Shown here: positions 3,191 through 63,048 of the stretch, piece after piece
Layout: every line of letters begins with the position of its first letter
How positions within the stretch are numbered: position 1 is the stretch's first letter
Origin: Macrostomum lignano
Taxonomy: Eukaryota
Direction: 5' to 3'
Assembly (NCBI GenBank): GCA_002269645.1
Contig: NIVC01001046.1
Location: 248,001 to 312,000, forward strand
DNA length: 64,000 nucleotides
Translations under genes and position numbers: made by a program
The notes under the pieces: model-generated
What the model was told of the DNA's origin: nothing
Database searches by the model: none
The model's input: the letters and a program-made list of their open reading frames with translations, nothing else

Positions 3191-3550
3191 TTTTTTACTA
3201 GAGGCAGGGGGGTTGTGTGCACCCTGGCGCACTTTAAGCGACATAGGCACACAACCGGCGAGAGGCATTACTGCCCATTCCGCCGACTCCCCTGAGCAGG
3301 CATACAAGCGCGCGGATACGTACGCAGGCACACACTCACACAGGAGTGTACAGCGGCCCTAACTTTATTTTATCGTTAGGCATGTACATTTCACTGCGCC
3401 TTGGGGGGTTGGCTCTCAAGACCGTTAATTGCACGAGCAGAGCCAAGCCGAGATACCAATTCAGCCCCAAATTAATGTGACTGCACTTGGAATCGAGCCT
3501 GGGTCGCTGGCACACCAGAAGCCTGCGCTACCGCTGGGCTACGGCCCCCC
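3191..3550 (-). mobile_element. tRNA-derived SINE, full-length copy A
   Basis: The reverse complement starts GGGGGGCCGTAGCCCAGCGG (A box) ... GGCTCGATTCC (B box) and ends in an A-tail. Perfect 14-bp TSD ttagacctgccatt (3177-3190, 3551-3564). Homologous copies at 27261, 33421 and 38323. Confidence 0.93.
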
Positions 3551-5719: not shown

Positions 5720-16645
<10,926 letters not shown>

Positions 16646-28665: not shown

Positions 28666-28842
28666 GCAACTGGATTGGTGGCCAAGCTGGCCGCCAGCCA
28701 AGGCCTGCAAATTCAAAAACAAAGTCAATATATAGTATAGCAACCTTTGAAGTTAGTGATGAATCTTAATATAAGCAAATTTTTCCTAGCATACAATCCC
28801 CGCTGAAAACGGCAACTAGGCCAAGAAGCGTCCTAAAGTTAC

Positions 28843-29001
28843 CTGGTAAGTCGAGTTGGCAAAGAGTCGCCTAAAAGTCTATTTGAGGTGTTTTATTGTC
28901 TGCGACTCTAAGATGCTTCTGTAGTGACTATGGGGCCATGGAGTCGTATCTGAGGCGTGCTGGAGTCGCTGTAGAGTCAATGAGTTGCATCTAAAGCGCA
29001 T
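28843..29001 (-). other. Probable 5'UTR exon of staufen containing a 40-codon uORF
   Basis: Acceptor gctaacacag|ATG and donor cag|gtaact. ATG at 29001 runs to a TAG at 28881-28879. Confidence 0.45.
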
Positions 29002-31103
29002 CTGTGTTAGCTTATGAAAAATTTGAATCGCATTTTGCAATTATAGCAACTATATTTACTCTTAAGGGACTTAAGCAATAGATTTGTGGATATCTGAATA
29101 GGGAATATGTGAATAGGGAATATCTGAATAGGGAATATTTATTATTCTGTGTACATTTTTTGTACCTAAAAATCATAAAAATGCATGGCACAGCTCCAAT
29201 CTTTGGTTTTATGAATCTATTTTATCATCTCTGTTACAAATATTGCTACACAGTCAGCTAAGAATGATAAATTAGACTCATAAAACCAAAGAGCTGAGCC
29301 GTGCCATTTTAATGGTTTTTAGGCACAATATAAGTGCAAATGTATGTAAAATAAAAATTAACATAGAATCCTAATTCTTTGAACAAAAAGCTTTATGAAT
29401 ATCGATTGAGAAATAAGAAAGGCACAACATATCAAAAGATAAACACTAGCTCTGCCTCCTATCAAAAGCAATAACAATTTTTGTGCTCAAAAAATTAAAA
29501 ATTCTTATCTCCATAGTGGATTTTTTTGGAAAAGACTGCCTTCAAAATTGTCCAAGAAACAAGGTTTCCCATCCTTCTATTTAAGTTGTCCTTGATATAG
29601 TTTGTCTGGTAGTACTAGCACTACTATAATATCCAGTATTATAAGCACAATTTTCAATGCTTTGCATTCTCATTAACAGATTGCAGATTACAGATATCTT
29701 TATCAGCTAGTTGCCAATGAAATATAACAAATGGTATTGCCAATACCATTTTAGCCTCATAGTCTACTAGCATCTGCCATTGAGTGTGACAAGTATAGCT
29801 GCTGGTTCACCAAAAGTGCTAGACAGGTAATTGGAACAGAGTTACCACTATCTACTTAAATCAAGAGCAGAATTTGAATAGACTTGCGTAGGGTACAAGG
29901 CTGAGACTGCACCTGTGGCTAATGGCTAAGCTTTATCTGCAATTGTGGATATATGGTTACTAATGCTAAGGCTGCATCTACAGTTATGGTTATAGCTAAG
30001 GCTGTGGCTGCAACTGTGTCTATGGCTATTGAAGCTGTGGCTGTGGTTGCTAAGGTTAAGGCTGCTAAGGCTAAGGTTGTGGCTGCAGTTGCATGTGTAA
30101 AAAGAGTGGCCTAGCTAGGTCCCCTGGTCAATGGGCCTATAGATATAGACTGGTTATAGCATAGCACAGCTGTCATTGTTCTAACTATCTCTGGACAAGG
30201 GCTTTATATTATATTAACAAGTAATCATAATATAATGACTCATTATATTAGTCATATATAGGATAAGGTCTTATCAACCAAACAAGATAAAGGTAGGCCT
30301 ACCTTCAAAATTGATTATAGTCATTTTGATAATAATAAAAAGACCTTTTTGGTATTTAGCCATTATGGTTTTAAATAGAAAATTATCTTGCCAATCTTAC
30401 ATAATATAAAACTTAAAACTTCACAGGATTGCTGAAATGGTAGTGTTGTCTTGTTTTATTTTATTCCTTTACTATTATAGAGTTGCATTTTTTGTATTTT
30501 TGCATTATCTAAATTCAGTGAATATTTCTCTGTGCTTTTTAAATGGGCATTTTAAAAGAAGGATCCTTTATGTTTATGTCAAGGACTTCTAGACTAACAG
30601 GACGTAAAAATAAAAATTTTTTTGGAGGCCACAATGTCCTGGAAAAAATACACTGCGAAGATAGGAAAAAAATCAGTTCATATAGCTGTGTAGTGAAGTT
30701 TTCATTTTCATATTCTTTTCCCTTTATTTCATAATCCCAAAGTTGCAAATACTCACAAGTGGCATTAGTCAAATATGAAACTAATTCAAGAAAAAAAAGT
30801 TATTCAAATTTGTAATATAATAATATTTTAGCCATATATATTATATATATTTCTATATATATGGTTAATTTTTCTAGGTAAACTACGAGTATATTGTAAT
30901 TTGTTGAAACTTGCACATTAATTTTGTGATAAATTTGAAGGCAAAGAAAATTACGCAAAGCATATATATTGAAATTAGATATTTAAAGTAATTAATGAAA
31001 AAAGTAGATTCTATAATTTTATGTTGCTATTTGCTAACTCAGAGATTCTAATGTACATAATAGCTCGTATTTGGTCAATTACAGGATGCTTGGTGCATGC
31101 ATC

Positions 31104-31400
31104 CATACATGCGCAACAGTCGGCCGAGTCGGCCGATCCGGCCGACCGATTTGGCGGCCAACCAAGGAGGTCGAAAAAATGCCCACCCGAAAACTTAGTA
31201 CTTAGTAGTACTAAGTAGCTGACGAGGCATTTTGGCTTAATAAGACAGTTATAGTTACTCCTGCCGTTTACCCAAAGTTGCGTTAATTTTGCTTTCGGGT
31301 TTTTTTTCATGTAAGTCGCATTTTTGGTCAAAAACTACGTCGCATTTTTGTTAAAACTAAGTCGCATGGCCGACCGAATTTCGGAGGTTGCGCATGTATG
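31104..31400 (+). mobile_element. hAT-type MITE, copy 1 (young, CpG-rich)
   Basis: 14-bp TIR catacatgcgcaac / gttgcgcatgtatg; perfect 8-bp TSD catgcatc (31096-31103, 31401-31408). Confidence 0.92.
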
Positions 31401-31699
31401 CATGCATCTGACTTATCCAGACCAGAAATTATAATAGATTGGTTAAAAAAACTTTTAAATAAAGAAGTTAAACACATGCAGATATATACATGTGTTTTGT
31501 TGTATTTTATTTAAAGTTTGTTTCATTTTCTTTTAGATCATATCAATTACTATTATTCTTACTTGCTACTAAAATGGCTATTATTGAAGTAGACTATTAT
31601 CATATAAATCATCTCCTATTACTCATGACCAACTCATTGACTAACCCATCATATCTTCTATTTTTCATGAAAGGTGAAGCATGTTTGTTTCTATATATG

Positions 31700-32061
31700 C
31701 TGGGTTTTTTGGGCCATACAGGGTTTTTTGGCCCCTCGAAAATTTCATTAGCAACTGGATTTTAGGCATTAGAGGCCAATCTGGCAATTTTATTTTCTCT
31801 GTGCTAGTTGCCAATTAAAAAAATTGTTTTTGCAAGTATAATGAAAGCACCATATGAATTGATATGATATGATAGAATTGTTAGTTTGTTATTAATATTG
31901 TTAATAGCATGTACATGTTATTCAAAATTTAGTGTTTTGGAACTATTTATCCTTAAGAATTTGGCTAGTTGCCAATGGGCAACTGAAAATAGCCATTAGC
32001 AACTGGATTTTGAGCATCAAGGGCCAGCTGGCAACTGGATTTCCAACCTTAAAAAACCCAG
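31700..32061. mobile_element. TIR element (ctgggtttttt ... aaaaaacccag) inserted into the left TIR of hAT MITE copy 2
   Basis: 11-bp TIR and 8-bp TSD tatatatg/catatatg (1 mismatch). A partial second copy starts at about 42324. Confidence 0.7.
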
Positions 32062-32343
32062 CATATATGCACAACAGTCGGCCGATCTAGCCAACCAATT
32101 TGGCAGCCAACCAAGGTAAGTTGCAAAAATGCCCACCTGAATAAATACCCCAAATAGTACTAAGTAGATAACGAGGCATTTTGCCTAAATAAGACAATTA
32201 AAGTTACTTCTGCCATTTACCCAAAGTTGCATTAATTTTGCTTTAGGGTTTCTTTTACATGTAAGTTGCATTTTTGGCCAAAAACTATTTTTTGTTTAAA
32301 CTAATTTGCATGGCCAACTGAATTTTGAAGATTGTGCATTATG
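32062..32343 (+). mobile_element. hAT-type MITE copy 2 (decayed)
   Basis: Collinear with 31104-31400. The original left end is at 31692; degenerate TSD tttgtttc/tttgtcac. Confidence 0.85.
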
Positions 32344-33420
32344 TTTGTCACCAAAACAACTTTTCACCAAAATGACCTATATTCTTCCGAATTGAACATG
32401 TAAAAAGACTTGTTTTTGTCAAAAAGAAATCTAACATGAATATTTCAAGAGCCCACAAAAGTATATTATTTAAGAGAAGATATTTTCATCTAAAAAGTAA
32501 AATAGATAGTAGACCTAATCAATTATACTTGTAGTTATAAATTATAATCATAGGCATGATATAGCATGAAATATTGAAATAGGCCTATTGCAATATAATA
32601 TTAAATCAGAGACTTAAGAAGTTGGTAAAACTAAAAGGCACTTATAGGCCTACATAAGGGTTAAAGAGCACTTATATATGCCTTACCTCAAAATTTTACC
32701 CGTCCAGTGCAACTTAATTTTGTCCAGATTTGCAACTTAGTTTTTCCCAATTGCAACTCAGTTCCTCCTAATTATGACTTAATTCTTCTTGATTATGACT
32801 TAGTCCCCCCAATTGCTACTTAATTTTCACTTTGTATATGACTTTTTGTGCTTTTCTTCTTTTTCTTTCTTCTCTTTTTTCTTTTTCCTTTCTTTTCCTT
32901 TTCTCTTATTCTCCTTTCTTTCTTCTTCCAATTTTCATTTTTCACATTTTTAATTTAGCGACTTACCTTGGCTAGCAGCCATTTCACCCATCTAGTTCAA
33001 ATGGGTATTGGACATATATGGGAGCACTATACAAGAGCTAGCGCTATGTATGACCACCTGATGCACAACCAATGGCAATGCACTAAAGTTACACATGCTG
33101 AGAAATTTGAAATTTTTGATTGTAATCACAAGAGTAGGCCTATAAAGTTGTCTATTCTCAAGGCATTGTACATTAAATAGTTAAAGCCCACTATAATTCT
33201 ATAAACATCCAACTTGGTGGTAGAAGGGCGAGTGTCCATTTAAGTATAAGGGTATTCTGACCCTATGTGCTTACCTCTTATTTAGGGCTATCTAACTCTG
33301 CTAGGCTACCCATACCTGCATCATTTTGGCTTACTAGGGCCTAGACTTTAAAAAAAATTACCAACTCTCTATATCAATATTATTGCCTGAAGTGAAGATG
33401 TAGATTGTTTGGCAAAACAT

Positions 33421-33793
33421 GGGGGTCTGTAGCCTAGCAATAGTGCAGCTGCTTTGGTGTGCCAGCGACCAAGGCTCGATTCCAAGTGAAGTCACATTAA
33501 TTTGGGGCTGAATTGGAATCTTGGCTTGGCTCTGCTTGTGCAATTAATGGCCTTGAGGGCCAACCCTTCAAGGCGTAGTGAAGTGTACATGCTTAACAAT
33601 AATATAGTTAGGGGCCTAGGGCTGCTGTATACTCCTATGTGTATGCCTGTGTATGTATCCACGCACTTGTATGCCTGCTCAGGGGAGTCAGCAGAATGGG
33701 CAGTAATGCCTCTTGCCAGTTGTGTGCTTATCAGCTTATGTCGCTTAAAGTGCGCCAGGGTGCACACAACCCCCCTGCCTCTAATAAAAAAAA
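33421..33793 (+). mobile_element. tRNA-derived SINE copy C (full length, C->T/G->A decayed)
   Basis: Collinear with copy A; A-tail; TSD ttggcaaaacat (33409-33420, 33794-33805). Confidence 0.92.
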
Positions 33794-33849
33794 TTGGCAA
33801 AACATGTTGTGCAATTGCAAGGATTAATAAATTGTAAGTTTGGTATTAT

Positions 33850-34700
33850 TAAAGAAAAAATGCGAATGTTCGTTTTTGCTTTCGTTTTCCTGGCTTTCCT
33901 CAAACGATGTACCTTACCTCGACTCTACTTTTGACTTTAAGTTTAACTTTAACATTTCATAGAATCATAGCGGGCATAGGGCTACAGACTAGGCCCTAAG
34001 GTCTTCCAATATAGTCAATCAACAGTATTCTTGTGCTCCCTACCCTAGGCTTACTACCGGTAGAAAACAATAATGTTCTGTTCAATAAGTTGTCAAGCAC
34101 TCAATATAATCTCTCAATGTGTTGGCACGTAGTTCGAGCCTTGGTTGGCTAGTGTAGAGAACCGGTTTTTTCTGCTGCTCAGCGAGTTCTCAGAAATTAT
34201 TATTTATTCTTAGTTAGTAAAAGCGTTTTAACTGACAGTAAAACTTTATTTTTTTAAATAAAAGTGCTATTCTTTCTAGCAATTGAACATCTAAAATCTA
34301 TTTTGCCAAAAAACATTTTGTTTTAGTATGTATTTACAAAAGAGATTCCCGGGTTTATCGTCTGGACATCAACGTAAACAGCGAATAAATTTATCATCAG
34401 TAGGCGTTGATAATTTTCGGTATCAAGTGCTCTCTAATAACGGTATAAAAGTTGTTAAGATACAACGTTCAGGTTAAACATCTTCCGTTGTTAGTTTAAA
34501 GCGTTGTTGGAATCTAAAAACGAAGAAACTGTTAAACTTAAAAGTTCAATCGATTCACATTGTTATAATTCTTTGTATAGCAAGCCGACCATTACACCAT
34601 TAACAGTTAAGACTTAGATTATCAGCTTCAGGCTACGACTTATCTATTATCGTATTACTTTCGTTCATAGACATGGAACTCGAGTAAGTGCTTTGTTTTT
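33850..34700. promoter_or_regulatory. CpG-retaining island; probable bidirectional promoter region of staufen (-) and ENY2 (+)
   Basis: CG dinucleotides are common here but nearly absent on both sides. Minus-strand donor gag|gtaagg at 33918/33917; ENY2 first exon at 34671. Confidence 0.55.
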
Positions 34701-37700
34701 TATATATTGTAGCCTACCATAAGCCTAACGCCCTAATAAAGCCCAAACCATAATTTTTTTTAGGATTTTAAACTTTTTTGAGTCTCAGGCCTAGCTAGGA
34801 AAGATAGCTCCCTATTTATTGTTGCCATTTTCAACCAGGGTTAAACAATATGGAAATATGTAGCATGCAAGTTAGGTGAATTAATTTCTGATGGTAATTA
34901 TAAATGGCAGTTGTTATTTGTCCGGTGACCGGACGAATAGCGATGTGGTTATTTGTCCGGTTACTGGATCCTGACCATTCTTTCCTATTCATCCGGTTAA
35001 TACCAGACAAATAGACATTTTGTTATTTGTCCGGTTAAATTGATAATGCTAAAATATCTAGTTTATAAAAACCACAAGGGTAAATATTCCTAGACTTCAA
35101 AGACTTCTTACTCATGTCTTGATTATTATATTGTTATACTAGTGTGTGTCTTATACACCAAATTATGCCGAATTGAATGCACTGCTTTGCTTACACTCAA
35201 CTAATACAAGAAAATATTAATCAGTATACGAGAAAAGGTCTTAAAAGTCTAGAATATTCATCACAAAACAAATAAGATATTTGTGTTAGCAATTTAACCA
35301 GACAAATAGCAAAAAGGCTATTCGTCTGGTCACCGGACAAATAACAACTGCCATTATAAATAGTAGGCCTATAGTATAACTATAGGCTAGGCTTTAGTAG
35401 ACCTATAGATATATGATATATTGTATCTAATCTAAAAATTTCAGTTTCAGTTTTAGTTTGTTTTAGATCTCATAAAGATAAATCAACTTTGTATTCTTGC
35501 AAACTTATAAACTAGGCCTAGCTGCCTAGGCCTATATCAACAGAAACAATATAAAATTTATAATATAGACCATCATACATGCACAATGTCCAAAATTCGG
35601 TCGGCCATGCAACTTAGTTTTAACAAAAATGCGACATAGTTTTTGGCCAAAAATGCAACTTACATGTAAAAAAACCCTAAAGCAAAATTAACGCAACTTT
35701 GGGTAAACAGCAGGAGTAACTATGACTGTCTTATTAAGCCGCAATGCCTCATCAGCTACTTAGTACTACTACTTCGGTGTTTTTTGGGTGAGCATTTTTG
35801 CAACTTCCTTGGTTGGCTGCCAAATCAGTTGGCCAGATTGGCCAACTTGGCCGACTGTTGCGCATGTATGTAGACCATACATGTACAACCTCCAAAATTT
35901 AGTCGGCATGCGACTTAGTTTCAACAAAAAATGTGACATCATTTTTGGCCAAAATGCAACTTACCTTGTCCTCAGTGCAACTTAGCTTGGTCCTATTGCA
36001 ACTTAGCTTAGCTCAGTCTTGCTACAACTTAGCTCTGTCCTATTGCAACTTAGCTTGGTCCTATTGCAACTTAGCTTGGTCCTGCTGGGACCTAGCTCAC
36101 CCTCAGTGCTGCAACTTATAGCTCTTACAACTCTTATGTTTTTCTCTTTTTTGCTCCCCTTTTCTCTTTTTTCCTTTTCCTTTTCATTTTCATCTTTTGT
36201 TTTTTGGTAGTTGATCAATTTTAAAACTTACCTTGGTTGGCTGCTAAATTGGTCAGCCAAATTGGCCAATTTAGCTGACTGCTACGCATATATGATATAG
36301 ACCTATACATCTTTTGAATTTCATTTATATATGAAATTTTTATATAAGAATACAGAAATAGAAAAATAAGCTTAATTCACAAATAAGCTCATTATAAAAA
36401 TAAGTTTAGAATTTGGAATAGACTTTGTTGGGCTAAGATTGTTTTATCATAATTTAGATCCAGATACCTGCAATTGGCTAGCCATTATACTAATTTCTTA
36501 GATACTAATGTTTTGGATGCATTTAGATGACAATTATAGCAACAAGTTGAATCTTAAAGCATGCATTTAATCTTTTTCAGATATGGGACCTGCCTAGAGA
36601 CTATTGATTAAGTAGATATTTGAGTATATTGATATTGGGAAATTATATTATAATTTACAGTCTTGCAAAATATTAAGATGATAGTTCCTTAAAATTTGGT
36701 CACTTCATTATCTAGATTTACTAACAATTTTTTGATATGACAAAGCATCTAAAAACAATGGCTACTTTGTCATCTTGATAACAAGATGAAAAATTGTCTA
36801 GGAACTATGCAAGCTTATCTATATATATCTATTTGTAGATATACATATATACATGAGCTAATGGTCTATGTGTATATACAAGTGTGTATGCATTTAATCA
36901 ACACATTGCCCATTTGCTAGCCAGCTCCACTTACAAAAAGCCTAGTTCTAAATGCCATGGAATATTGATGCTCTGCTATTTGCTGTACCACTGGCTGACA
37001 ATGGACTAGTTAAATGACAAGTTGCTTGTCTATTTAAATAAAGTCACAGTTACTTTCGCTATTTACCTATTTGCACATGCACATAAGTAACTTTCTCTTT
37101 TGCACAGGAGTGTCAAAGCCACTTATTTGGATAGGCCAGTATGGGTGTGGCCCTTTGAAGTATCCATGTGTGGCATGTGCAGCTTTTTGTATTTTATTCC
37201 AAAAAGGTTCATTATTTGTAAAAATCAAAAAAGTTTCTTATATGCACTTGAACTAAATAATAATGTTAAGGCATTTATTTACAATGCTTGATGTTGAATC
37301 ATTGATATGCTCATATTTAGAATTTTATCAGTAAAAGATTAGTTTTTTTTGTTGGATGTCCAAAATATGCCTAATTCCTCCACTTAACTACAGCACATGA
37401 CTAAAGGCTGTCATGTCACTTTGGAAGCCATTAAGTTTTTTTTCCTAGTTTTAATAGAGTCTTTTCATCACTTCATTCCCATCTGCAGTGAAAAGCGTGC
37501 CCGGGTTCGTGCCCAGGTCAACCAGCGCCTAATCCAATCTGGGGAGCGCGAGCGACTAAAGGAACTTCTGCGAACTCGCCTGAATGAATGCGGCTGGCGC
37601 GAGAAGCTCAAGCAGCACTGCAAGGAGATAGTTCGCCAGAAAGGTCTTGAACAGATCACCGTGGATGACCTGGTCGCCGAAATTACACCGAAAGGTCGCG

Positions 37701-37783
37701 CCCTGGTGCCTGACGAGGTCAAGAAAGAGCTGCTGCAGCGTATTAAGGCTTTTCTAGCGCAGACAACGGCCGACGAGAAGTGA
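34673..37783 (+). CDS. ENY2: Transcription and mRNA export factor ENY2/Sus1 (101 aa)
   Basis: Micro-exon ATG GAA CTC GA|gtaagt (34673-34683) plus exon 37489-37783, giving [93 protein letters not shown]. Confidence 0.95.
34906..35352. mobile_element. Mutator-type MITE in ENY2 intron
   Basis: 36-bp TIR ggcagttgttatttgtccggtgacc(g/a)gacgaatagc; perfect 9-bp TSD attataaat; internal atttgtccggtta sub-repeats. Confidence 0.88.
35571..36294 (-). mobile_element. hAT-type MITE copy 4 (long variant) containing nested copy 3 (35574-35870)
   Basis: Outer TSD atatagac (35563-35570, 36295-36302); inner TSD tagaccat (35566-35573, 35871-35878). Both ends match the copy-1 TIRs. Confidence 0.88.
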
Positions 37784-38322
37784 GAACAAAGTTGCAACTT
37801 ATTTTACAAAAGAACTACTAACTATTCACTTCCAACCGAATCCAAATAGCTACAGCGTAAAATTTCATTCTTGTTTGCTTAACTGTGCTTTGTTGTGCTC
37901 CTAATTTGTTATATTATATGGTACTCATACACTAAAATTATTTGTGTAGGTGCCACGGCCGCTGATCTATATTTGAGCGCTTCACGATTTTTTATAAGTT
38001 GCATCAATCTCCCAGTTTCCAGTGTATTGTAAATTATAGCAGTGCTTAAATAGCTTCGGCTGTGAATCATTGCTCTGTGTGTTTAATAACATTTAGTGTC
38101 CTGCTTTTCAACTTTCAAATTTGAAAAGAGAAGAATTGGTTTTTTGTCTTTACTTAAAAACTAGTTCAACTATGGTTTACACTCGACGTTAAGAGTGCAA
38201 CTTCAGATAATCAAGCTGAGACTCCACTCCACTCCACTCCATAGCAAACCGTATTTTAAGTTCTGTAGTGCCGCAAGGGTTTATGTTTTTGGTCCTAAAA
38301 TTAGCTTTTTATGCACTTTTAG

Positions 38323-39128
38323 TTTTTTAGTTATGGCAGGGGGGTTTGTGCACCCTGGCGCACTTCAAACGATATTTTCACAACCAGCGAGTCGAGGCAT
38401 TACTACCTATTATTCCAACTCCACTGAGCAGGAAAACGCGCGCGGATAAAAACATACACTGGAGTGTACAACATTCCTAACTTTATTTATTGTAGGCATG
38501 TTCACTTCTCTGTGCCACAGCGGTTACCGGTTAGTCCTTAAGCAGGGTGTCCACGACCTCGCAAAACCTGCAATTCAGATATGGAAAAACCTAGAAAATG
38601 CGCTCGTACTCGTAGTTGTTTTGATATTTCTTACTTTTCTTGTCACTTGTGACATTATATTGATTAACATGCAACTTCTATGAGCATATCTTGTACTGAT
38701 TTCTATAATTCTGTCTTGAAATTTGTGCAGCAATGGTCAATGGACAGCCCATCTCAAAATTCTTTTTACAATATCACATCCCCTGTATTCTTTTTCACTA
38801 TCTGTAAAAGCATGTACAGCTTAAAAGTCCTTTATATTTCTGTCTATGAGATAGGTACAGTGTATATATTATTTAGGATTGTATTGGTTAGTGGCACTTT
38901 TCCTACGAGTACCGTATAAAAGGCACCTGAAAATGGTCATAGTGATAGAAAATCTGATAATGGAAAATGCATAGACACCCTGCTAAAGGGCGTTAATTGC
39001 ACGAGCAGACCTAGGCCAAGATTCCAATTTAGCCCCAAATCAATGTGACTGCACTTGGAATCGAGCCTGCATGGGCCGCTTATTGGTATATAGGGCGCCT
39101 CGCTAAATTGCTAGTAGACTACGGCCCC
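38323..39128 (-). mobile_element. tRNA-derived SINE copy D, split by a ~440-bp insertion
   Basis: 3' half at 38323-38540 and 5' half at 38990-39128 (ends ...tagactacggcccc); both match copy A. Confidence 0.8.
38543..38982. mobile_element. Small TIR element (cagggtgtc ... gacaccctg), hAT-like ends
   Basis: 9-bp inverted termini exactly where SINE D is interrupted; no clean TSD. Confidence 0.55.
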
Positions 39129-40894
39129 GTTTTCTTTATGCCTTGTAGAACTTGTATTTGCTTGAGGGAAAATGTAGCTCAATAAACCAGCAGAATATTC
39201 TAGTTTAATGAGAGTGAAGACTGAATATTCTGCTGGTTTAAGCAGATGTCACTAAGCCTCGATAATTTAACTCGTCCAAAATAATTGAAAAAACCAGTTA
39301 AAGAATGGATCTCTATTCTCAATCGTTTTATTGTCTCTAAATTTGACATAATTGGTCTTGGCCTTTTCGTTTCTCGTTTTGAAAACTTTTTACAATAAGG
39401 GATTTTTTATGAAATCTTATTCCAAATTTAGTTACTTAGTCGACGTGTCGACAATTCTAATACATCTACTGATATACAGCCTACTTTTATTATTACGATT
39501 TGTCACCAGTACCGCCTTGTTTAAAATACAAAATAAAGCGTTATTGTGCATAACTAATAGATGGAATTAGTTTTTGGTTTGTAAGTCTGTCTTTGTTAGT
39601 TTAAGGGAACAATTTTTGTTTTTTTCATGCATAAACTATTATGTATTTAAACGCTTTTAAATTAGGAAATTTTATCAGTATATAGCCCAATACGTTACCA
39701 ACTTCGAACGACTCTAAAGACTGAAGTTATTGTGAAGACCCAACTCCCGTGATCCTTGAATCTAGATCTCTTGGACTTGTACACTTAGTATTTGCGCTTG
39801 TAAAATTGTTTGTGTACCCTTCTGTACATTGTATGGGCCATCGAACGTAAAGCGTTTCCTTGGAGTCGTTGGCGACTGGCGTTTGGGCATATAGGCCCTA
39901 CTGGCAAAGTTTTAGGCCTAGTTTCCCGCGTTAAATTATTGTTACTAGTTTTTCTTCATTTTCAATGTAAATCGTGGCTAGACAACCTCAAGTGCCTACA
40001 AAGGCTGTAACTATAGTACCTCTTGCCAAGTTGCAGCCATTCATTGTGTTGTCTGGGACACACATTTTGACTGATAGCTGGCAGGCATACAATGCACTTT
40101 CCATTCCCAACCACGCATTCATCAATCACGTTTTGGTTGTTTGTTTGAAATTTGGTTTCAAAATAATTTAATGCGGGAAACTAGGATATTGCTCTAGGTT
40201 TATTTTTTGTGCGCAGAGTACTGAGTAGGCCTATGCATATGCACTAGGCCTAAATTTAAAAATTGCACTCTGAAATTGAAAAGTGGATGCAGTTTAGGTG
40301 TGGTCTTATAACCTATTTTTCTATTAAAGCCATATTCACACTGCCTTAAAATCAGGGTGCCTACACCCTCCTTTATCTCCTTTATCTCCTTTATTTTCTT
40401 TTATTTAGCAAACCCCTCCTTTATCTCTTTTATTTAGAAGATTTTTAGGACTTTCTCCTTTATTTTAGCCACTTTCTTTAGCTACTAGGATTTTTAGCAC
40501 TTGTACTTAATGTATTGTTAGTTTAGGGTTCTTTTAAATAATCATTTTTAGAAGACTATTCCATTGACTTGTATTATTTTCCTAGGCAAAGTTATATAGA
40601 AGAATAGTTTGTAAGTCTCAACAAAGGTTTGTATATATGATTAGTTAATATTTGAACAAACTTTAAAGCAGCAACCCTATATTAGCCACAATATTAGATA
40701 TGTGGAACTGTGGAGCTAGAAATATACAAGTTATTTTTATGACTGCAAATTGGCTAGAAAGATGATATGAACAAAGCAGTCAACAAAAAGGCCACAGAAT
40801 GAAACAACCATGAGAGTACTATACTAGGCCCTATATCCCTTGAGAGTACAACTGGGAGAGTATATAAGAGTACAACTGGCTTTTGAAGTAGGGA

Positions 40895-41500
40895 TTAACA
40901 GATTTTTACCTCAAAGGCCAGATAAAGAATCCAGCTAATGGCTGCAGGGGCAGATAAGGGTGGTAAGAAGAATGAATAGACAATAAGAAAAAGGAAAGGT
41001 GAGAGAAAAGATAAGAGAATAGATAAAATATAGAGTAGACAGAAGGGTAAAGGAGAAAGAGAAGGCAGAAAGGAAGGAAGAGGAGTGTGGGGACAATAGA
41101 GAGGAAAATAAGCAAATAAAAGAGACAAGAAAAAAGAGGAAAGATGATAGAGAGAAGAGATAAAAAAAGAAAGAAGAAAAGAGAAAGAAGAAAGATAAAA
41201 GAGCAGAAAACAGATGAGAGAGAAGAGATTAAAGAGAAGAGATAATAGGGGAGAGTTAAGAGACAAGAGGAGATAGAGGGGAGAGATAAAAGGAAAGATG
41301 AGAGAGCCTAGAGGGAATAGGCCTACAGGAAAGATTAGAAAAATAGAATAGAGATAGGGCCTAAGCAAGATAAGAAAGAAAAGAGGAGAGTAGAGAGGAC
41401 AGGAGAATAGGAAGAATAGAAAAGAGATGAAAAGAAAGAGAGAAGAGAGTAGAGAGAAAAAAATAGATAGAAAAAAAGATAGAAGTTTCAGAGGACCCAA
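40895..41500. repeat. Purine-rich (GA) low-complexity tract
   Basis: Almost only A/G on the + strand; the minus-strand F/L/S 'ORF' is an artefact. Confidence 0.8.
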
Positions 41501-44500
41501 AGGACATAGAGATTCAGAGGCAAGAGGCCAGAGTTTGCCTATACAGGCCTTAGACAGACATTGCCTATCATTGTTACATTACCAAATTAAATCTCCTTTA
41601 TTTTGGGATCAGTCAAACAGTCTCACTTTATTTTACTTTCTCAAAATGTGTGGGCACTCTATAAAAAGAAAAAAGAGAAATTGCACTTTGAGCCTTAAAA
41701 TGCACCATGAAAGTAAGTAGCATAAGGTGCAATTTTGCACCTTGTCTCTGGCAAAAAAGAAAACCCTGACATTGCTGCTCTACTATATCTGGATCTATTG
41801 CATACTACTAGAGTACTAGTGCATTTATTGGTAGACATTCATATTCTTCACACTAAACCACACAATATAGCAGTTTAGTAGGCCCTAATAGTAATAGCCT
41901 TAACTTTAGAGCTTAGTCTTTTTTTCTCAGTATTACAATTTATAAACTTTAGTTTCTATAATATTATAGCTTCTATATTAAGCTTCTATGTTAATACAGC
42001 TTCTATATTACAACAAGATAGTTTACAAGATAGATACAAGATAGTTTCTATAACATTTTTAGTATGTAGGACTTATAATAGGGGCCTATGAGTTATTATA
42101 CTAATGATTAAAAATGAATAGGCCTATAGGGTATATTACCAAAAAATTCAAGAATGCAATAACAATGCATGTCTCAGTTTCAATGACAATCTTTAGGCCT
42201 TAGTTCCAACTTTAGAGTACAGGTAGCCTAAAGCTTTTGTCTAGCCCATACTTAAGATTATTAAATCATTTATATTAAACATTTCTAGTATATATTTATA
42301 ATAACTACTATATACTTGGTACCTGGGTTTTTTAAGATTGGAAATCTAGTTGTTAGCTGGACCTTGAGGCTCAAAATCCAGTTGCCAATGGCTATTTTTG
42401 GTTGCCTATTGGCAACTAGCCAAATTCTCAAGGATAGGTATTTCCAAAGCTGTATTTAAAAAGTAGAAATTTTTTCTCTTAACTTTATGATTGCTATCCA
42501 TGTTTCAAACAATAACAAACTAACAAAGTCTCATGGCATACATATACTTGAATTATGCCTTGTAGAACTTATATTTGCTTGGGGGAAAATGTAGTTCAAT
42601 AAAACCAGCAAAATATTCTAGTTTAATATATCTTTGAAACATGTTGTATTAGGCATATTTTTTGATAGAGCCAATATTTTACTTGGCTATGTGTGTCTAG
42701 CAAACAATGCTTTTAAAATACAAAGTGAATTGATAGGTAGTTTGTAGGGTATCTTTTTAGTTAAGAATCTATTTATTTTTCCTTTGCTAATATTAGTAAA
42801 ACATTAAAATAAAAATTTAGGTTTAACATATAAAAATTTCTTTGTGTTCAGAGCAATCTCTGTGAACAGAGGCTATCTTTTATTGGTCATAATACAAAGC
42901 TAGTATTTGATATATTAGAAAGCAATTACTTAAATACAGCAATCTAATTTTTATATAAGTACAAAATTTCTGCATTTTAAATAGTGTTTTGCCTTACAAA
43001 TATAGTTTTTGTTCCTTAGTCAATAGTAGATCTTGAATTTCATTGGGGGGGGGGGCAACCCAAGTTTGGGGCACTAACATGAGTATAAAAGTCACAAATT
43101 TTGAAGCTAATGGATGCAAATATGTATATAAAGAGTAAAAACCAAGTAAAGGGCCAAAATGCATATAGGAAGTTTAGAGGGTGCAAACATAGATATTCTA
43201 TCAAGGTTTTTTTTGGGGAGGGTAGCCACTCTCCCTACCCTCTTTCTAAATCTTCCCTTGGCAATAGTGATTATATAAATAGTGAAATGGCTACTTTTAC
43301 TATCAATATACAAACAAATTTTAAAATAAGCAAAAACATATAGTATAAAAATAATTAAAGGTTTTTAATATGGTAACTAAAGAGACTTTCTTTTTAATAC
43401 ATCAATACAATGGCAACTTCTAGGATTATTTGCCTATTTGACTATGGGTTTGGCTTATGCCTAAAACAATCAACAATATAAGCTTAATGGAAAAATCATT
43501 TAACAATCAGTCAAAATTAGAGTTATGCCATAACTAAAATTTTTCCATATCTCATATTTGTATCCATAGCTGTAAAAGATTGGCTGGCTATAATAGCTAT
43601 AAGAATGTAGCCATAAATAGTGCTCTATAGAATATATTTGTTGTTCTCAATGCATTCTATAAGCTAAATTGCCTTTTTGACTATTCTCTTTCTTTTCCAT
43701 TATTCTCCCCTCTTTTCTTCCTTTTGGCTCTCTTCACTACCTTTTTTCTCTCATTTCTCCTCTCTCTCCTGGTCTCCTTTGCCTTCTCTTCTTCTCTCCT
43801 CTCTCCTTTCTATATTGTCTAAAAACCTCCATATCCATAACTCCCCTAGCTATATTAATACCTACAGTGGAACTCTACTTAAAATAGATCATTAAGTCTT
43901 TTTGTCTACTGCCAATTTTGCAAATAGTATTGCACTTGACAAATAAGTAAAAATAAGCTAAATGAAAAGACTGCAATTCAAATGGATAGTATAAATGCCT
44001 TTTATTTTTCTGAATGCCAATGTTAAGTATTATATTAGGTTTACTTTTTTGTTACCTAATTTAGGTATATAATATTTTAGATATATAAATGTACTTTTGC
44101 CTCTAATTTTGCCTATTGTTTGCTTGTTACTTTTCATTTATCTTAGACTTAAATCAGTATAGCTTATAGAATCATTTTATATATCATTGCATTCAAGAAA
44201 AACTCAGCAAGCATTGCCAAAGTGGTAGAAAGCCTAGCAAATAATAATTGTAGAAGTTAGGTTACAACATAAAAAATTAAGAACAGATTATCTATAGAGA
44301 GACTAGATACCTAAATATGGACAAACCATTTCTAGGATATAGATAAGGATTGCTAGGTTATAAGCAACTAAATAGAAAGATATTTTTGCATGACATTTAA
44401 GTAAATTTTTAAATGGATCTAGTATTAGTACACATTATATATACCGGTTTTAACAGAGTAATTAATTTTAAAACAAATAGAACAATCAAAGTGTATCTTA

Positions 44501-44728
44501 TAGGCAATTTTTACTAGGAGCTAACAAACATCAAAACATAAAATATGAATAAATCAAGGGAAAACATGGAAAATGGGAAGAAGAGAAGAATAACCTTTAG
44601 AACTGATTAACACTATATACTTTAGTAATATATACTATAGGCACTACATGTATATAATAATACTATTAGGGTATCCTTGTATTACACCCAGCTGCATTGA
44701 TATGTCTAATTCAGCTATTGACTCTGCC

Positions 44729-47700
44729 ATGTACCGCGGCGGAGGTCCCAGAGGCGGCTACGACCGAGACGGCGGTGGCGGTCGGGGCGGCTTCAATCGT
44801 GACGGCTTCGGCCGGGGCGGCGGCGGCGGCGGATTCCGCGGCAGGCCGCCAATGAGAGGCCGGGGCGGAGGCGGCGGCGGCTATCGCGAGTACTCGCCAC
44901 CCCGTGGACCGCCAGGCGGGCCGCCGATGCCGGTGCCGCGCTCCAAGTACAGAGCGTCTCCTCCAATGCCTCCGCCGCCACCTCGTCACGGTGGTGGCGG
45001 TTATCGCGACTATTCGCCGCCTCCGCCGCCTTACTATCGAGGGGGTGGCAGGCGCTCTCCGTCGCCTCCACCGCCGATGATGGGCGGCGGTTATCGCCGA
45101 GATTACAGCCCACCACCAAGGAACAGGGGCGGCGGCGGCGGCTTTAGGGACCGATCGCCTCCTCCGCCTCATATGGGCCGGGGCGGACCTGGCGGCTACG
45201 GCGGCATGCGAATGAGTCCGCCAAGGTACAGGTAAGTAAATCGCTTGTTTGTCTGAGTTTATTGTTATCTGAAGTAAATAAATGTTGGTTTGTTGCTTAT
45301 TTATATTTCCTAACTTGATGCAACTAGGGTGTAGATGTAGATCCATAGTTCCTGTTAATGGAGTAATACAGTTAGTAAGTTAATGCAAAGAAATTTCTTA
45401 TGATCTCAATCAGCTCCATGATTTTTCTGAAAAAAACCCCAGAATGTAACTTTCTTAAGTGCGTACCAACACAATGATAAAGATCGTGTAAACATGAGAA
45501 CTTCTCAAAAACTTTCGTAATAACCCTACAATTTTTCCGTTTCTCCAGAGAACGCTCGCCAATTAGGAACCATCGGTGAGTCTTCGGAGGAATATGATAC
45601 TTCAACCTGACATGTAAATGTTTTAATTCTATTTTCAAATAATCGTTACTAAGTAATAGAGATCGACAAGTCAACAAAGATGATCGATTATCGAAGGAAA
45701 TTTTTGAAAGATGGAAGTAAAGAAGTTTTATTTGGTTAATAAAGAAGCCGTCCACCTGTTTCGAATGATATCAGAATTATGGACTGTGAATTTTACATTA
45801 ATTTACTGGATTATCGCCAGCTAAGTGGCTTCTATAGGCAGTCAAGATGCAAAGAATCAATGTTGTTTTGATTTTACGCAAATATTCAAATAACCAAAAA
45901 TCTTGAAATTGAAGACGACACGAGGTCTCGGTTTACCTGTAATACGAGCTAAATTTGAAGAAAAATGAACTATAGTATCAGCAAAGTCGATAATAGTGGA
46001 AACTGCTGCGAGTACGTATTGAATCTTCAATAATTGTCAGATATCAGAAGAGTCAAAGAAGCCGTCATCCGGAAATTGACTACCAATCTTCAAGTCTTGA
46101 CTCATTGAATAGATATAAAAGCATTTACAAATTTGGCTTTTATGAACTATTGAACTGCTGCACAGACAAATGCAAGCTCAACTCGTCAATGCATAAACAA
46201 GACGAACTGCAGGAGGAATTGCGATTGCATTCACGTGTTATAACGTTATCATTACAAAACTGCAAACCAAAAATGAACATTCCAGAATTAAAGTACTTTT
46301 ACGAACTTTTTAACAAAAAAACTATGGATCTTCGAAAGTAAACATTAAAAATTCCGATTTCAACTAAGAATCTCTTCTCACGGGTGCACAGAAACAGTCC
46401 TGAGTATTTTTGCTGGTCTTTTGGCAAATTTACACAGCCAGTCTACAGTTCATCAGAGCTGCTTAGTGAAGTATATTCGCGAACCATACTGACCATAATA
46501 ATGGTTAGAAGCAGTTATAACGACAAGAAAAACAATGTTACAGAGAGTTCCGGCATCCAAGCCCCAGGGGCCCGTCCCCGCCTCGCTACGACCATCGAGG
46601 CGGACCGCCGCCTCCACGCTTTCCGGATAGGCCGCGCTTCGACGATCGAAACAATGGCGGCGGCTTCAGGCGCGATGGCGGTAAGAATGTAGAAAATGTA
46701 TATATAGTTATCTTAATGCAGTCTGAGAGATAAAGTCTTGAGCCTTCTTAGAAGAGCAAAGCGACGTTAGACTTAAAAACCAATTGATTGAAATTAAGCA
46801 ATCGTCAGGATTGTCGCTAAAATTGATATTTTACAATTGATTTTATTCGGAATAGCACTGATGCAATCATAAAATTTCACTGCGAATTCAAGTGGAAGAG
46901 CGATGGTTAAAATGATTGCATCAGGCTAGTAGTATTCTGAAGAGCGTGTTCGACACAACCAATGAGCTTTATAAACTCAATGAGAATCAACGATCGCGCA
47001 GGCTGTTTCACTCGTTCTTTGATATTCAAATTTTCAGAGATTTGCACTAGTTACTACTTTCAGCGTTAGGAAAGGCAACAAGCGTGTAAAATGTTAGGCG
47101 ATGATTAGGTGTAATCTGAAGTGCAGCAAACGACAATTAAGTTTAACATATTAGCTGTAGTTATAAAGGTTCCGAAGTCATTTTCAATTGCTATTAAAAA
47201 ATACGACTGTCATAAAGTTGTATTTTATGGTTTTACTACAATACCGATTTGCAACTTGTGACGACTGCAAGGAATCTGTTCGATTATTTCAAAAGTGACG
47301 GAAAGTGAAATCTACATGCGTGTAATATCTAAAGGAAGAATTTCTAGAGAGTATATCGAATCTTACTACACCAGTTTTGTTCCAATACGTTTGTGTCGCA
47401 GTTCTTACAAATTGCTAAACTAGTAGATTAGTTTATCTTGAACTAATTAATTAGGTGGACCAGTTTAGGTTCTGAAAAGCCAACAGAACATATATGAGTG
47501 TAATCCATAGTAGAATAGTAGAGTCGCGCCCCAAAAAAGCATCACACTGTTCCGTCAAAAATAAAAGCCAGTGCTATGCATCGGGTTCCGCCTATCTGCT
47601 TAGCTCCAAAGCTATTGTTTTAAAAGATTTTATATAGTACTGTCACTCGAAAACATGTTGAAAAGAATTGCTGCGAATTCTAATTACGATCAGTGACGTA

Positions 47701-48049
47701 CGTCTTTTGGTTTTGTAACAGCTCTTGGTCGAATGTTAAAATGACTATCATAAGCAGGCAGTTGCCAACGATGGAGAAACTACCACTTACGTTACACGCA
47801 TTCTAATTAACGGCGATTGCAGAGCCTTTTAGAGGCAGAGGCGGCGGTGGCGGCTATTTCAGGCCGCCTAGGGGAGATTTTCGTAATCCGCGCAACGGAG
47901 GCGGCGGCTATCGCGGCGGCCGCGATGAGTTTTTCCACCGACCAAGAGGTCGAGGCGGCTTCGGCCGCGGCGGCGGTGGCGGCGGGGAGTTCCGTTCGCG
48001 CCGCCGTAGCGGCAGCGGCGGGCCGCCCAACTCGCCTCCTCGACGATAA
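44729..48049 (+). CDS. Uncharacterised low-complexity RGG/GYR- and (D/E)YSPP-repeat protein (~288 aa), probable RNA-binding disordered protein
   Basis: Exons 44729-45231 (ag|gtaagt), 46544-46680 (g|gtaaga) and 47823-48049. Phases join cleanly (867 nt). GC-rich coding islands in AT-rich DNA; no folded domain is visible. Confidence 0.85.
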
Positions 48050-50140
48050 TAATAGTTCTTCAAGGCCGTTGGCCAAGCTCGTAAAAGTTGATTTATCATG
48101 GCCGGTTTAATCAAGTCGATAAATACTGATGAATCTAAACGCCAACGAGTGAACACGTTTTAAAATATGAGCGAGAATAATTCGCAAACAGTTTGTAAAC
48201 TTTTAAATGTCATTAATCCCTTTATGCAAAACGCCTACGGCGACGTAAAAGCGGGGTGTTTATAAGTGACACATTTAACCTTTGTTAGCATATTTTCTGC
48301 GCACGTATCTTGTTTGACATGTTTTTGACCGCAATTCAACGATCTCTAAGCAACAAGAAGTTTTTACGGTTGATGACACGAGAAAGGTATTGTGCATGGA
48401 GTTTGTCGAATAAAATTGCTTTAAGCATCTGTCAGCCATAAAGGTGCAATGGCTTTAAAAGCTGTTGGTTATTAACGACTAAAATTGCTTGAACGAATGT
48501 TAAAAGGTTGCAATACTAATTAAATATGGCAAGTAAACAATGAACTAATATTTAAACGAATTAAACAGACGTTCGTTCACCCAAGGCAGCGTCAATAGAG
48601 CAAAAAAATCTACAATGATCTTGTCGCGGCTAATTGGTTTTCTTGAAGGAAATTGATTGATTAAACTAATGAAGATATTGATAAGGTCAAATTCTCAACT
48701 GATGGTGCACATAAACACATTTTAAGTCTCAAATTAATTGAAGGCAATCGGTCTGAACCCAATAATTGTCAGCTGGTCATTTATCTTCCCCCCCCCTGTT
48801 TGTCTGTTGTAACTATTCGTAATATTCAAATTGATTTTTCTTGTTCCTTTAGTGCGAGTATTGTTCCACTTCGCATCTATGCAGCGTTTGTTTCGTGTTT
48901 TATGGCTCTTTTTTATTTTTACTTATGCTGCTGTCTCCCCAAGAGTTGCTCACATTGATAGGGGCTGTCTAAATCTGAAACCTGGAAAACAACTGATGCT
49001 ATCAAATTGAAACCATATCTGATTGTGGGGCAAAAAATCATTGTTATTTACAGAATCACAGGTACTAGATTTAATGCTCCTCGAGATGATGTGCTCAGTC
49101 CTCCTAGCTTATTAAGCAAGTTTTGTTGTCTAATTAATTTCCTAAATAATCCCACTAAACTATAGTAGTTTGAAATACGGACGCATCTCATTCATGTTTT
49201 GCACAATTAAGTCGGTTAATGTGAAATCTACTCTCAATATTTAATTGCTTTTTTAATGAAAAAATAATAAACTTGCTTTTTTTAATTCGTACTGTTAGTT
49301 GTGTCCCACCAACGTGACTGTGTTTTGCTTACTTCCATATATCAGTCTGCAGCGGTTATTTTAGTTTGTTAGCCACTATTAGAAACTGAAGGTAAAAGAT
49401 GACAGTAAGCCATCGGCTGTGGCAAGTGTCTGACTCGCTGATACGCAACTCCAGTTTATATAGTCGAGGAGATCACTGTACCCTAATGGAGTCATCGGTA
49501 CGTGAAACAAGAGGACGCCAATTAGACTCTTTATTTCGGATCCGTTAGACCAGATTGCTAATTTTTATTGGATTGAAAGTACCAAATATCCGTCAGGTTG
49601 ATGATCGAAAAGTCCATCGAAGTCAACGCAGACTCGAATGTCGATAATTTCGGTACAAGTGCTTTGAAAAGGCTTAGAAAAGCCCCATGCTTTGGATTGA
49701 AGATCAAAATGTATGAAGTCGATTCATCTTCAAAGAAAATCCGGTCGTTCTAAACTGTTAAATATTTTTGAATTGAAGTTCTTGAAAGACAATGATTAGA
49801 AGCTTTCCGTAAGTATGCGATGTGTTATCCATGCTTGATTCGGATGTGGCAAAAATTCTTCGGTCTGAACAACTGTGGACATGATATAATTGCATACTGT
49901 TAAACCGGGTTATGCTTCGATGCCAGTATTTAGTTTCTTAGTCTATAAGTTAAGACTTTTCATCGGCAAAAGTCAATCAGCAAACCTCTTATTTCAGCCT
50001 GCGACACTCCGATCATCGCCTGGCAACGTAAAATTAAATTGTGACAAATTGTAGTGCGCCGATCGCGTTACACATTGAGCTGAACTTTGGCACTTATATT
50101 ACTGTAAATATTAGTTTATTGGTGTTTTGTAGCTTTCTCC

Positions 50141-63025: not shown

Positions 63026-63048
63026 TGACCTCCATTGCAATCTTCTCT

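Follow-up and report, generated by a model that had tools for sequence, protein, structure and literature searches.

Invertebrates such as Ciona, honeybee, oyster and annelids have mosaic methylomes, with gene-body methylation and depletion of CpG below expectation (observed/expected ratio, o/e). In these genomes methylated and unmethylated domains adjoin, gene starts stay unmethylated, CpG is lost as TpG or CpA, and the whole depends on DNMT1 and DNMT3. Methylation in Hymenoptera and Daphnia is 5'-biased, lying mainly within a few kb downstream of the transcription start site (TSS), centred on exons 2-4 and fading further along the gene. Vertebrates are methylated globally, with a bulk CpG o/e of about 0.2, hypermutable CpGs, sharp borders and protected promoters, while fungal RIP is directed at duplicated DNA, where C-to-T hypermutation leaves AT-rich, CpG-poor blocks with sharp edges. 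Mosaic methylation has been described in annelids and molluscs (PMC11292947), and reviews report that the flatworm Macrostomum lignano keeps DNMT1 and DNMT3 with a low overall level of 5-methylcytosine (5mC; PMC11292947, PMC9246332, PMC10658182), which fits a genome with only a minority of its DNA methylated.

In this work we analysed a window of 64,000 nucleotides of the M. lignano genome (contig NIVC01001046.1, positions 248,001 to 312,000), in which three blocks almost devoid of CpG, named deserts 1 to 3, lie beside the genes for staufen, ENY2 and an RGG-rich protein. Read as methylated domains, the deserts would share with mosaic methylomes all the traits listed above other than the methylated gene body. 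The differences lie in what is spared. The ENY2 exons of oyster, Owenia and Lingula are depleted like their introns (CDS o/e 0.24, 0.39 and 0.19, respectively; every intron 0.08-0.36), whereas the exons here are spared, at 1.07-1.16; and where mosaic methylomes involve the whole transcription unit, only a 5' intron or spacer is depleted here, the downstream introns being spared (1.20). Depletion in the deserts is also deeper than in these yardstick species, and no CpG-free run in 71 kb from three other spiralian genomes exceeded 926 bp, versus 4.2 kb here. The canonical gene-body signature is missing both from the downstream introns of the RGG-rich gene and from the 5' part of DBR1 (0.97), a fourth gene which has no desert; the M. 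lignano pattern is not the usual invertebrate one.

Concentration in the first few kb of a gene would recall Hymenoptera and Daphnia, but here the exon that immediately follows the desert is unaffected. CpG hypermutability of a similar order, sharp borders and protected promoters recall vertebrates; unlike in vertebrates, where only the CpG islands depart from a methylated default, CpG-normal DNA is the default and depleted blocks are the exception, with o/e near 0. The locus shares with RIP C-to-T change in sharp-edged, AT-rich blocks; RIP was nevertheless rejected, as depletion affects unique DNA in the deserts, and CpG is kept by repeats elsewhere (a LINE with o/e 0.7-0.9, non-desert SINEs, minisatellites), by the young MITEs and, outside the deserts, by the two locus copies that are 98% identical. 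A protein search with the LINE endonuclease ORF at a threshold of 1e-30, which was too strict, returned no matches.

Extent and borders of the CpG deserts

The coordinates of the deserts, of the transposable elements (TEs) within them and of the flanking segments are given in Table 1. The longest CpG-free run extends from the last CpG at 40212 to the next at 44445, a distance of 4233 bp with a GC content of 31.6% which still holds 144 GpC. The initial annotation had seen by eye no CG between about 40214 and 44444, and this was borne out, with 92-105 CpG expected in the run: base composition predicts 104.7, and 91.5 remain when composition is taken per 50-bp block, which takes account of the low-complexity tracts (purine-rich and CT-rich) of desert 3. 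Block shuffling, repeated 2000 times, gave 93 CpG on average and never fewer than 68. It could be argued that the deserts are a compositional or technical artefact, caused by low complexity without room for CG or by assembly errors at modified bases, and desert 3 does contain about 0.9 kb that is purine-only or CT-only. However, blocks of 20-50 bp still predict 85-92 CpG, the young TE insertions within the deserts are read through with normal CpG, and an independently assembled second genomic copy has the same deserts with other residual CpGs, which makes such an artefact hardly credible. This second copy (NIVC01002242.1, here L001), reached through an ENY2 search that matched M. lignano at 99% identity, is 96-98% identical to the window locus; a search with the DBR1 exon found no close relative.

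Table 1. Features of the M. lignano locus (positions within the window)
Feature	Position	Strand	Description
Desert 1	29030..33862	.	Between staufen coding exon (minus strand) and ENY2/staufen island; holds young MITE, old MITE copy, window-only indel, old SINE
Young hAT-like MITE insertion	31104..31400	.	8-bp target-site duplication CATGCATC
Old copy of same MITE family	32076..32343	.	Inside desert 1
Old tRNA-derived SINE copy	33421..33799	+	Right end of desert 1
Segment with normal CpG	33863..34683	.	ENY2 start (exon 1, 34673-34683) and minus-strand donor-like site 33917
Desert 2 (ENY2 intron 1)	34684..37488	+	From coding sequence and L001 annotation
Young MITE in desert 2	34906-35352	.	9-bp target-site duplication; missing from L001
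Old MITE copies in desert 2	35574-35964, 36231-36294		
ENY2 exon 2	37489..37783	+	Nearly entire CDS; normal CpG up to intron border
Non-coding segment with normal CpG	37784..40212	.	ENY2 3' end, TE fragments
Desert 3	40213..44691	+	Upstream of first coding exon of RGG-rich gene
Low-complexity tracts in desert 3	40.35-40.5, 40.9-41.5, 43.68-43.81 kb		
First coding exon, RGG-rich gene	44692..45235	+	Acceptor-like site before exon (...tattacacccag)
Control region	45236..50100	+	Downstream introns and exons of RGG-rich gene; AT-rich, normal CpG

In 1-kb windows the stretch 29-31 kb had a CpG o/e of 0.15-0.18, 32-34 kb one of 0.23-0.33 and 36-37 kb one of 0.04; the four windows of 40-44 kb gave 0.13, 0, 0 and 0, versus 0.99-1.35 in the AT-rich controls at 44-50 kb. 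Outside TEs, desert 1 has 12 CpG where 95 are expected (0.13) and ENY2 intron 1 has 3 where 49.8 are expected (0.06), in agreement with the scarcity noted earlier at 29.0-33.8 and 36.3-37.4 kb; desert 3 as a whole has 1 where 109 are expected. The AT-rich DNA at 45.3-50.1 kb had been called normal in CG and is so, the control region having 215 CpG versus 179 expected (1.20 at 38% GC). The CpG o/e comparison that had been proposed, made by feature, separates deserts, at 0.00-0.13 outside young TE insertions, from flanks of similar GC content at 0.78-1.20. Residual CpGs in the deserts occur for example at 29300-33753, 34729, 36285, 37057 and 44445, and the clusters among them are the two young MITE insertions, which matches an earlier guess that TE copies account for them; both are missing from the second copy. 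The segments between the deserts had been described as CpG-rich promoter islands: their normal CG content was upheld, their CpG richness was not, since an o/e of 0.8-1.15 at 35-39% GC matches the bulk of the window once tandem repeats are set aside (0.6-1.3). The borders are sharp, as had been claimed (about 100-450 bp): of six, four or five have a splice site or a motif resembling one within about 100-450 bp. Scanning the window for Rfam families and tRNAs gave no matches, so no RNA gene accounts for the deserts, and a look-up of the window ORFs for ENY2 and an LRR protein matched no record.

The initial annotation had placed the deserts within the few kb that follow the inferred promoters of staufen, ENY2 and the RGG-rich gene, which was shown for ENY2 only. 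Desert 2 coincides exactly with ENY2 intron 1, and the spliced coding sequence translates into the 101-aa ENY2. Desert 1 probably corresponds to one or more 5' introns of staufen; the segment at 33863-34683 (o/e 1.15) is likely a divergent promoter region, and the evidence on the staufen side is a minus-strand donor-like motif, gtcgag|GTAAGG at 33917, at the edge of the desert, which fits, without proving, a staufen 5'UTR exon in the island. In the RGG-rich gene an acceptor precedes the coding exon, and neither an upstream exon nor a TSS was found near 40 kb. Desert 3 is either an intron/outron or a spacer, and the promoter possibly lies within 37784-40212 (o/e 0.78). The exons flanking the deserts show no synonymous CpG loss (o/e 1.07 in ENY2 exon 2, 1.16 in the very CpG-dense RGG exon with its 75 CpG, 0.88 in the staufen exon). 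In none of the three does CpG across codon3/codon1 junctions fall below expectation, with 11 observed versus 9.6 expected in ENY2 exon 2, where 12 of 12 Arg codons are CGN, and 35 versus 24.7 in the RGG exon.

Direction and tempo of CpG loss

The direction of change was read from TE copies. The young MITE at 31104-31400, which keeps 23-24 CpGs (o/e 1.49, versus 0.84 in the other young MITE) and whose empty site is visible in the second copy, served with its 24 CpGs as the reference state for the older MITE copies. In the copy at 32076-32343, TG or CA has replaced 13 of the 20 reference CpGs and three are kept, with a non-CpG mismatch of 10%; the same conversion has affected 16 of 23 CpGs at 35574-35870 and seven of nine at 36231-36294. 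Aligned with a non-desert copy at 3184-3550, the SINE of desert 1 has TG (nine) or CA (seven) at 16 of 22 CpGs, and no reverse changes. The old MITE and SINE copies of deserts 1 and 2 have thus lost 65-78% of their CpGs to TG/CA with 6-13% divergence elsewhere, a decay of CpG at approximately 15-35 times the rate of other substitutions. One way to account for this would be age alone, with CpG decaying in all unconstrained DNA, the deserts being the oldest neutral DNA and CpG-normal sequence being young or constrained. The most depleted block, desert 3, does look old and degenerate, with its low-complexity tracts and high divergence between copies. Yet two non-desert SINE copies keep 11 of 16 CpGs at 7.8% non-CpG divergence, close to the 8.5% of the desert copy; about 4.9 kb of unique AT-rich sequence of the RGG-rich gene, mostly introns, remains at 1.20; and the non-coding flanks have no excess CpG turnover between genomic copies. 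An age effect is accordingly quite unlikely, and decay in TE copies tracks location, not sequence family or age.

In three desert TE copies, 45 of 52 lost CpG sites are TG (21) or CA (24). Such strand-symmetric products are expected for 5mC and not for deaminase damage to a single strand. One might consider a different CpG-directed mutator in place of 5mC deamination, for instance a cytidine deaminase with R-loops or single-stranded DNA of promoter-proximal introns as its substrate: R-loops form at gene 5' ends, the deserts adjoin gene 5' ends, and the sparing of exons is awkward for ordinary gene-body methylation. Besides the symmetry of its products, the loss is limited to the CpG context, other sites having only a slight GC-to-AT excess (16 vs 7 and 16 vs 12), and animals are not known to have such a CpG-specific enzyme; we regard this explanation as highly improbable. 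Selection against CpG in introns, for example to avoid CpG-reading proteins or silencing, is barely conceivable. An enrichment of the palindrome TAGGCCTA in the deserts does give their sequence some special character, but selection would not convert TE CpGs specifically to TG/CA at 15-35 times background, and the deserts diverge as fast as their flanks or faster, which indicates that they are under no strong constraint. It should be noted that TAGGCCTA was also considered as a transposon excision footprint, and this was not supported, since the two MITEs whose ends can be seen have different termini and duplications of 8-9 bp. In deserts 1 and 2 the decay is region-specific, strand-symmetric and directed at CpG, the signature of germline 5-methylcytosine.

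For desert 3 the polarity test on TEs is not applicable, since a self-BLAST returned only two short TE fragments, both with CpG-free partners. Its TG/CA o/e of 0.91 shows no excess (desert 1, 1.20; desert 2, 1.28), a measure which we judged non-decisive for deamination since at long-term equilibrium the surplus need not remain as TG/CA. Four sites that differ from the second copy (two TG-versus-CA discordant, two CG/CA), together with analogy to the other deserts, hint that desert 3 may also have arisen by deamination. Its counterpart in the second copy (15229-17940) holds 3 CpG, and part of desert 3 is 10-16% divergent between the copies, versus 1.3-2% elsewhere. The absence of CpG over 4.2 kb exceeds what the decay ratio from TEs predicts, which by a rough estimate is approximately 7 CpG at steady state.

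Comparison of the two genomic copies showed that 14 of 32 residual CpG sites differ within deserts and 40 of 589 outside (Fisher P = 4e-8), a turnover about six times faster in the deserts. Shared and differing sites number 10 and 9 in desert 1, compared with 28 and 2 at 33863-34683, 62 and 5 at 37784-40212 and 74 and 2 in the RGG exon; all 25 CpGs of ENY2 exon 2 are shared. Sites with TG in one copy and CA in the other number four in the deserts and none outside. The faster turnover and the confinement of these discordant sites to the deserts point to decay after the copies split, and CpG decay in the deserts appears to be ongoing. Together with the polarised TE comparisons, these data support the deamination domains that had been suggested earlier. 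Were the deserts instead a fossil footprint, with the blocks methylated in an ancestor, not now, and the deserts persisting through slow regain of CpG, the low global 5mC reported for adult M. lignano and the normal CpG of the two young MITEs would be readily understood. That is unlikely, given the sixfold turnover between copies only 1.3-2% diverged and the discordant sites; and as the MITEs postdate the split, they should have decayed little.

Probable germline methylation and its possible targeting

Taken together, the sequence evidence from one locus in two copies makes it likely that the deserts are non-coding blocks heavily CpG-methylated in the M. lignano germline, now or until very recently. 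Bisulfite data for this species were reportedly produced by Wasik et al. in 2015. Under germline methylation, deamination of 5-methylcytosine on either strand would turn CpG into TpG or CpA, and any sequence within a methylated block would lose its CpGs: young insertions would retain theirs, older ones would be two-thirds to three-quarters decayed, and the oldest DNA, that of desert 3, would have none. Unmethylated DNA would bound the blocks, namely the coding exons, the region in which ENY2 and staufen start and the remainder of the RGG-rich gene. The methylated unit would resemble a 5' spacer or long first intron and not a whole gene body. We infer that the blocks may be defined relative to promoters.

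The sparing of exons is the reverse of what canonical gene-body methylation does, which makes it necessary to assume some other targeting rule. A more specific proposal, which we put forward only tentatively and consider possible but doubtful, is a non-canonical landscape in which near-complete germline CpG methylation would be aimed at long first introns or 5' spacers, sparing both exons and the remainder of the gene body. It would stop within approximately one nucleosome of splice sites and drive decay at a rate at least 35-80 times that of A:T>G:C transitions, erasing every CpG over several kb. If this were true, the targeting rule would be unlike the H3K36me3- or exon-linked one of other animals, and T:G mismatch repair would possibly be weak.

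The locus predicts, by sequence alone, that germline methylation in M. lignano occurs in discrete non-coding blocks beside gene starts and not in gene bodies. If the pattern is confined to this locus, it would be one further case of methylation-driven CpG loss. If it is genome-wide, it would represent a new arrangement of animal DNA methylation, CpG o/e combined with TE-copy decay would provide a cheap sequence-only map of methylated domains, and M. lignano, in which RNAi and transgenesis are established, would offer a tractable system for the function of first-intron methylation.

Extent of the deserts and their recurrence in a second copy

Desert 3 contains a CpG-free run of 4233 bp, bounded by CpGs at 40212 and 44445, with a GC content of 31.6% and 144 GpC inside. 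Base composition predicts 105 CpG for this run, and composition in blocks of 50 bp, which allows for the purine-only and CT-only tracts of desert 3, still predicts 92; in 2000 block shuffles the CpG count had a minimum of 68. The gap from about 40214 to 44444 described by eye in the initial annotation is thus real, and the scarcity of CpG claimed for the other two deserts outside transposon copies also stands (12 CpG versus 95 expected in 29030-33420, and three versus 50 expected in ENY2 intron 1). AT-rich neighbours are CpG-normal, with observed/expected ratios (o/e) of 1.15 (33863-34684), 0.78 (37784-40212) and 1.20 (45236-50100), the last of which agrees with the normal CG content noted for 45.3-50.1 kb. 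The islands described as CpG-rich in the initial annotation lie in the first two of these segments, and are therefore CpG-normal.

The spliced ENY2 protein matches one from Macrostomum lignano at 99% identity (next-best match at most 82%), and the contig which encodes this match, NIVC01002242.1 (GCA_002269645.1; L001), is colinear with 20.4-49.7 kb of the window across staufen (minus strand), ENY2 and the RGG-rich gene at 96-98% identity. We regard L001 as a second genomic copy, either homeologue or allele. All three deserts are found there too, with three CpG in its desert 3 (15229-17940), and it is therefore very unlikely that the deserts are an artefact of assembly. The middle of desert 3 (41695-43176, against 15408-17204 of L001) is only 84-91% identical, compared with 96-98% for the rest of the locus; divergence there is 10-16% versus 1.3-2% elsewhere, and about 2.2 kb of the window (40350-41695 and 43176-44005) has no counterpart in L001.

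Features of the window, in window positions
Feature	Position	Strand	Remarks
LINE	728-4969	+	non-LTR retrotransposon; CpG o/e 0.7-0.9
tRNA-derived SINE family	3184-3550, 27268-27556, 33421-33799, 38323-38516		about 370 bp; A-/B-box-like 5' ends; four copies in window
Desert 1	29030-33862		staufen side
MITE, hAT-like	31104-31400		297 bp, 24 CpG; 8-bp duplication CATGCATC, terminal repeat CATACATGCGCAAC; missing from L001, empty site visible
ENY2 exon 1	34673-34683	+	last CpG at 34681
Desert 2	34684-37488		ENY2 intron 1
Second MITE	34906-35352		9-bp duplication ATTATAAAT, ends GGCAGTTG...CAACTGCC; missing from L001, clean empty site
ENY2 exon 2	37489-37783	+	CpG every ~12 bp, first 8 bp past acceptor
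Desert 3	40213-44691		upstream of first coding exon of RGG-rich gene
DBR1	50.5-53.7 kb		gene
LRR protein	57.8-59.5 kb		gene
Palindrome TAGGCCTA	30294, 32580, 32645, 33135, 35364, 35513, 35527, 39913, 40226, 40245, 41318, 42119, 51967, 60952		8 bp

The palindrome listed in the table occurs 14 times in the window versus 0.8 expected; 11 copies, with unrelated flanks, lie within the three deserts, two of them at the very left edge of desert 3, and none is present in the CpG-normal RGG introns. There are six extra variants of the form TAGG(G/C)CCTA, and GGCC is enriched about 3-fold across 29-50 kb. Minisatellites are abundant across the window (period 13-155, 64 TRF rows), including a 13-bp unit (ATGACCGTCCCTC, about 143 copies) at 61222-63030, where the near-absence of GpC over 1.8 kb follows trivially from the repeat unit. 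The LINE is probably degenerate, because the endonuclease, reverse transcriptase and RNase H are each encoded in a separate ORF; searched against proteins, the endonuclease ORF gave no match at E <= 1e-30.

Borders of the deserts and sparing of exons

Desert 2 coincides exactly with ENY2 intron 1. This is the only intron of ENY2 in M. lignano, where nearly the whole CDS lies in one exon; coding introns number three to four in the orthologues from oyster, Owenia and Lingula. The right end of desert 3 is an acceptor-like site about 10 bp upstream of the ATG of the RGG gene (44702), and the exon which follows holds 75 CpG in 544 bp. At its left edge (40212) there is no splice-site support, the sole donor-like site being at 39581. 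For desert 1, a strong minus-strand donor-like motif, gtcgag/GTAAGG (33917), is located some 55-120 bp from the right edge (33800-33863), and splice-site-like motifs at the staufen coding exon (donor-like at 28842, acceptor at about 28706) some 190-600 bp from the left edge. DBR1 has no desert. The initial proposal that deserts lie downstream of promoters is thus supported only in part: it is shown for one gene, ENY2, through its CDS-defined exon 1, is plausible for a second, staufen, may or may not hold for the RGG gene, which has no splice support at 40212, and does not extend to DBR1. A 15-bp unit (ATATCTGAATAGGGA) is repeated 3.3 times at 29090-29138. This repeat, which may be regulatory, lies just upstream (minus strand) of 230 bp with normal CpG content that could be a staufen 5'UTR exon.

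NCG codons are common in the ENY2, RGG and staufen exons. At codon3/codon1 junctions, most C-to-T changes being silent there, CpG is not depleted and lies at or above expectation (ENY2, 11 versus 9.6 expected; RGG exon, 35 versus 24.7; staufen exon, 22 versus 24.8). Nor do exon CpGs show extra turnover with respect to L001 (25 shared and none different in ENY2, 74 shared and two different in the RGG exon). The ENY2 loci of three spiralians with ordinary mosaic methylation, Crassostrea virginica, Owenia fusiformis and Lingula anatina (71 kb in all), served as a yardstick. Their ENY2 coding exons are depleted (o/e 0.24, 0.39 and 0.19, respectively), as are all of their ENY2 introns (0.08-0.36), whereas in M. 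lignano the exons are spared, and the pattern therefore differs from canonical gene-body methylation. Within the yardstick loci the longest stretch free of CpG measures 926 bp, compared with the 4233 bp of desert 3.

Direction and dependence on place of CpG decay

Two transposon families, a MITE and a tRNA-derived SINE, are represented within the deserts as well as beyond them. The two MITE insertions which are missing from L001 point to recent transposition. In older desert copies of the 31104-31400 MITE, CpG has become TG or CA at 16 of 23 (35574-35870), 13 of 20 (32076-32343) and seven of nine sites (36231-36294), with only 6-13% mismatch at the remaining positions. The SINE copies, none of which was called as a tRNA by ARAGORN, provide a control. 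Comparison of the desert copy 33421-33799 with the non-desert copy 3184-3550 showed 16 of 22 CpG changed to TG/CA and no change in the opposite direction, while two non-desert copies kept 11 of 16 with two to three changes each way. Divergence outside CpG was 7.8% for the non-desert pair versus 8.5% for the desert copy. Conservation of CpG in a control pair of equal divergence argues that the loss is set by place and not by family or age. The decay products are CpG-specific and strand-symmetric (21 TG, 24 CA), and as a rough estimate the CpG mutation rate in the deserts would be 15-35 times that of other sites.

Decay appears to be ongoing between the two copies of the locus: CpG sites differ more often in the deserts (14 of 32) than elsewhere (40 of 589; Fisher P = 4e-8), an excess which persists once the estimated four or so ordinary new CpGs among the desert differences are allowed for. 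At four aligned dinucleotides in the deserts, two of them in desert 3, one copy has TG where the other has CA, as opposed to none outside; such a pair is the sign of one ancestral CpG decayed twice independently.

Methylation as the probable cause

The best reading of these sequence patterns is regional CpG methylation in the germline, followed by deamination of 5mC. Reviews report that M. lignano has retained DNMT1 and DNMT3, which sets it apart from planarians and parasitic flatworms, and that its overall level of 5mC is low (PMC11292947, PMC9246332, PMC10658182); according to one of them the genomic methylation pattern in free-living flatworms is not known. Low global 5mC would fit a genome with only small methylated blocks. 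All of the evidence comes from one locus in two copies. The deamination domains first proposed are supported for deserts 1 and 2 by the place-dependent change of transposon CpG to TG/CA, and are likely for desert 3, which has no informative transposon copy and no TG/CA excess (o/e 0.91 versus 1.20 and 1.28 in deserts 1 and 2), and where the complete lack of CpG over 4.2 kb goes beyond what the rough rate estimate predicts. As to the borders, we speculate that CpG-dense DNA may be protected and CpG-poor DNA methylated, a self-reinforcing process whose edges would be sharpened at constrained sequence. The deserts would be of a familiar type, the loss of CpG driven by methylation within a mosaic genome; what is unusual is their placement, confined to intron or spacer with exons spared, and the near-completeness of the depletion.
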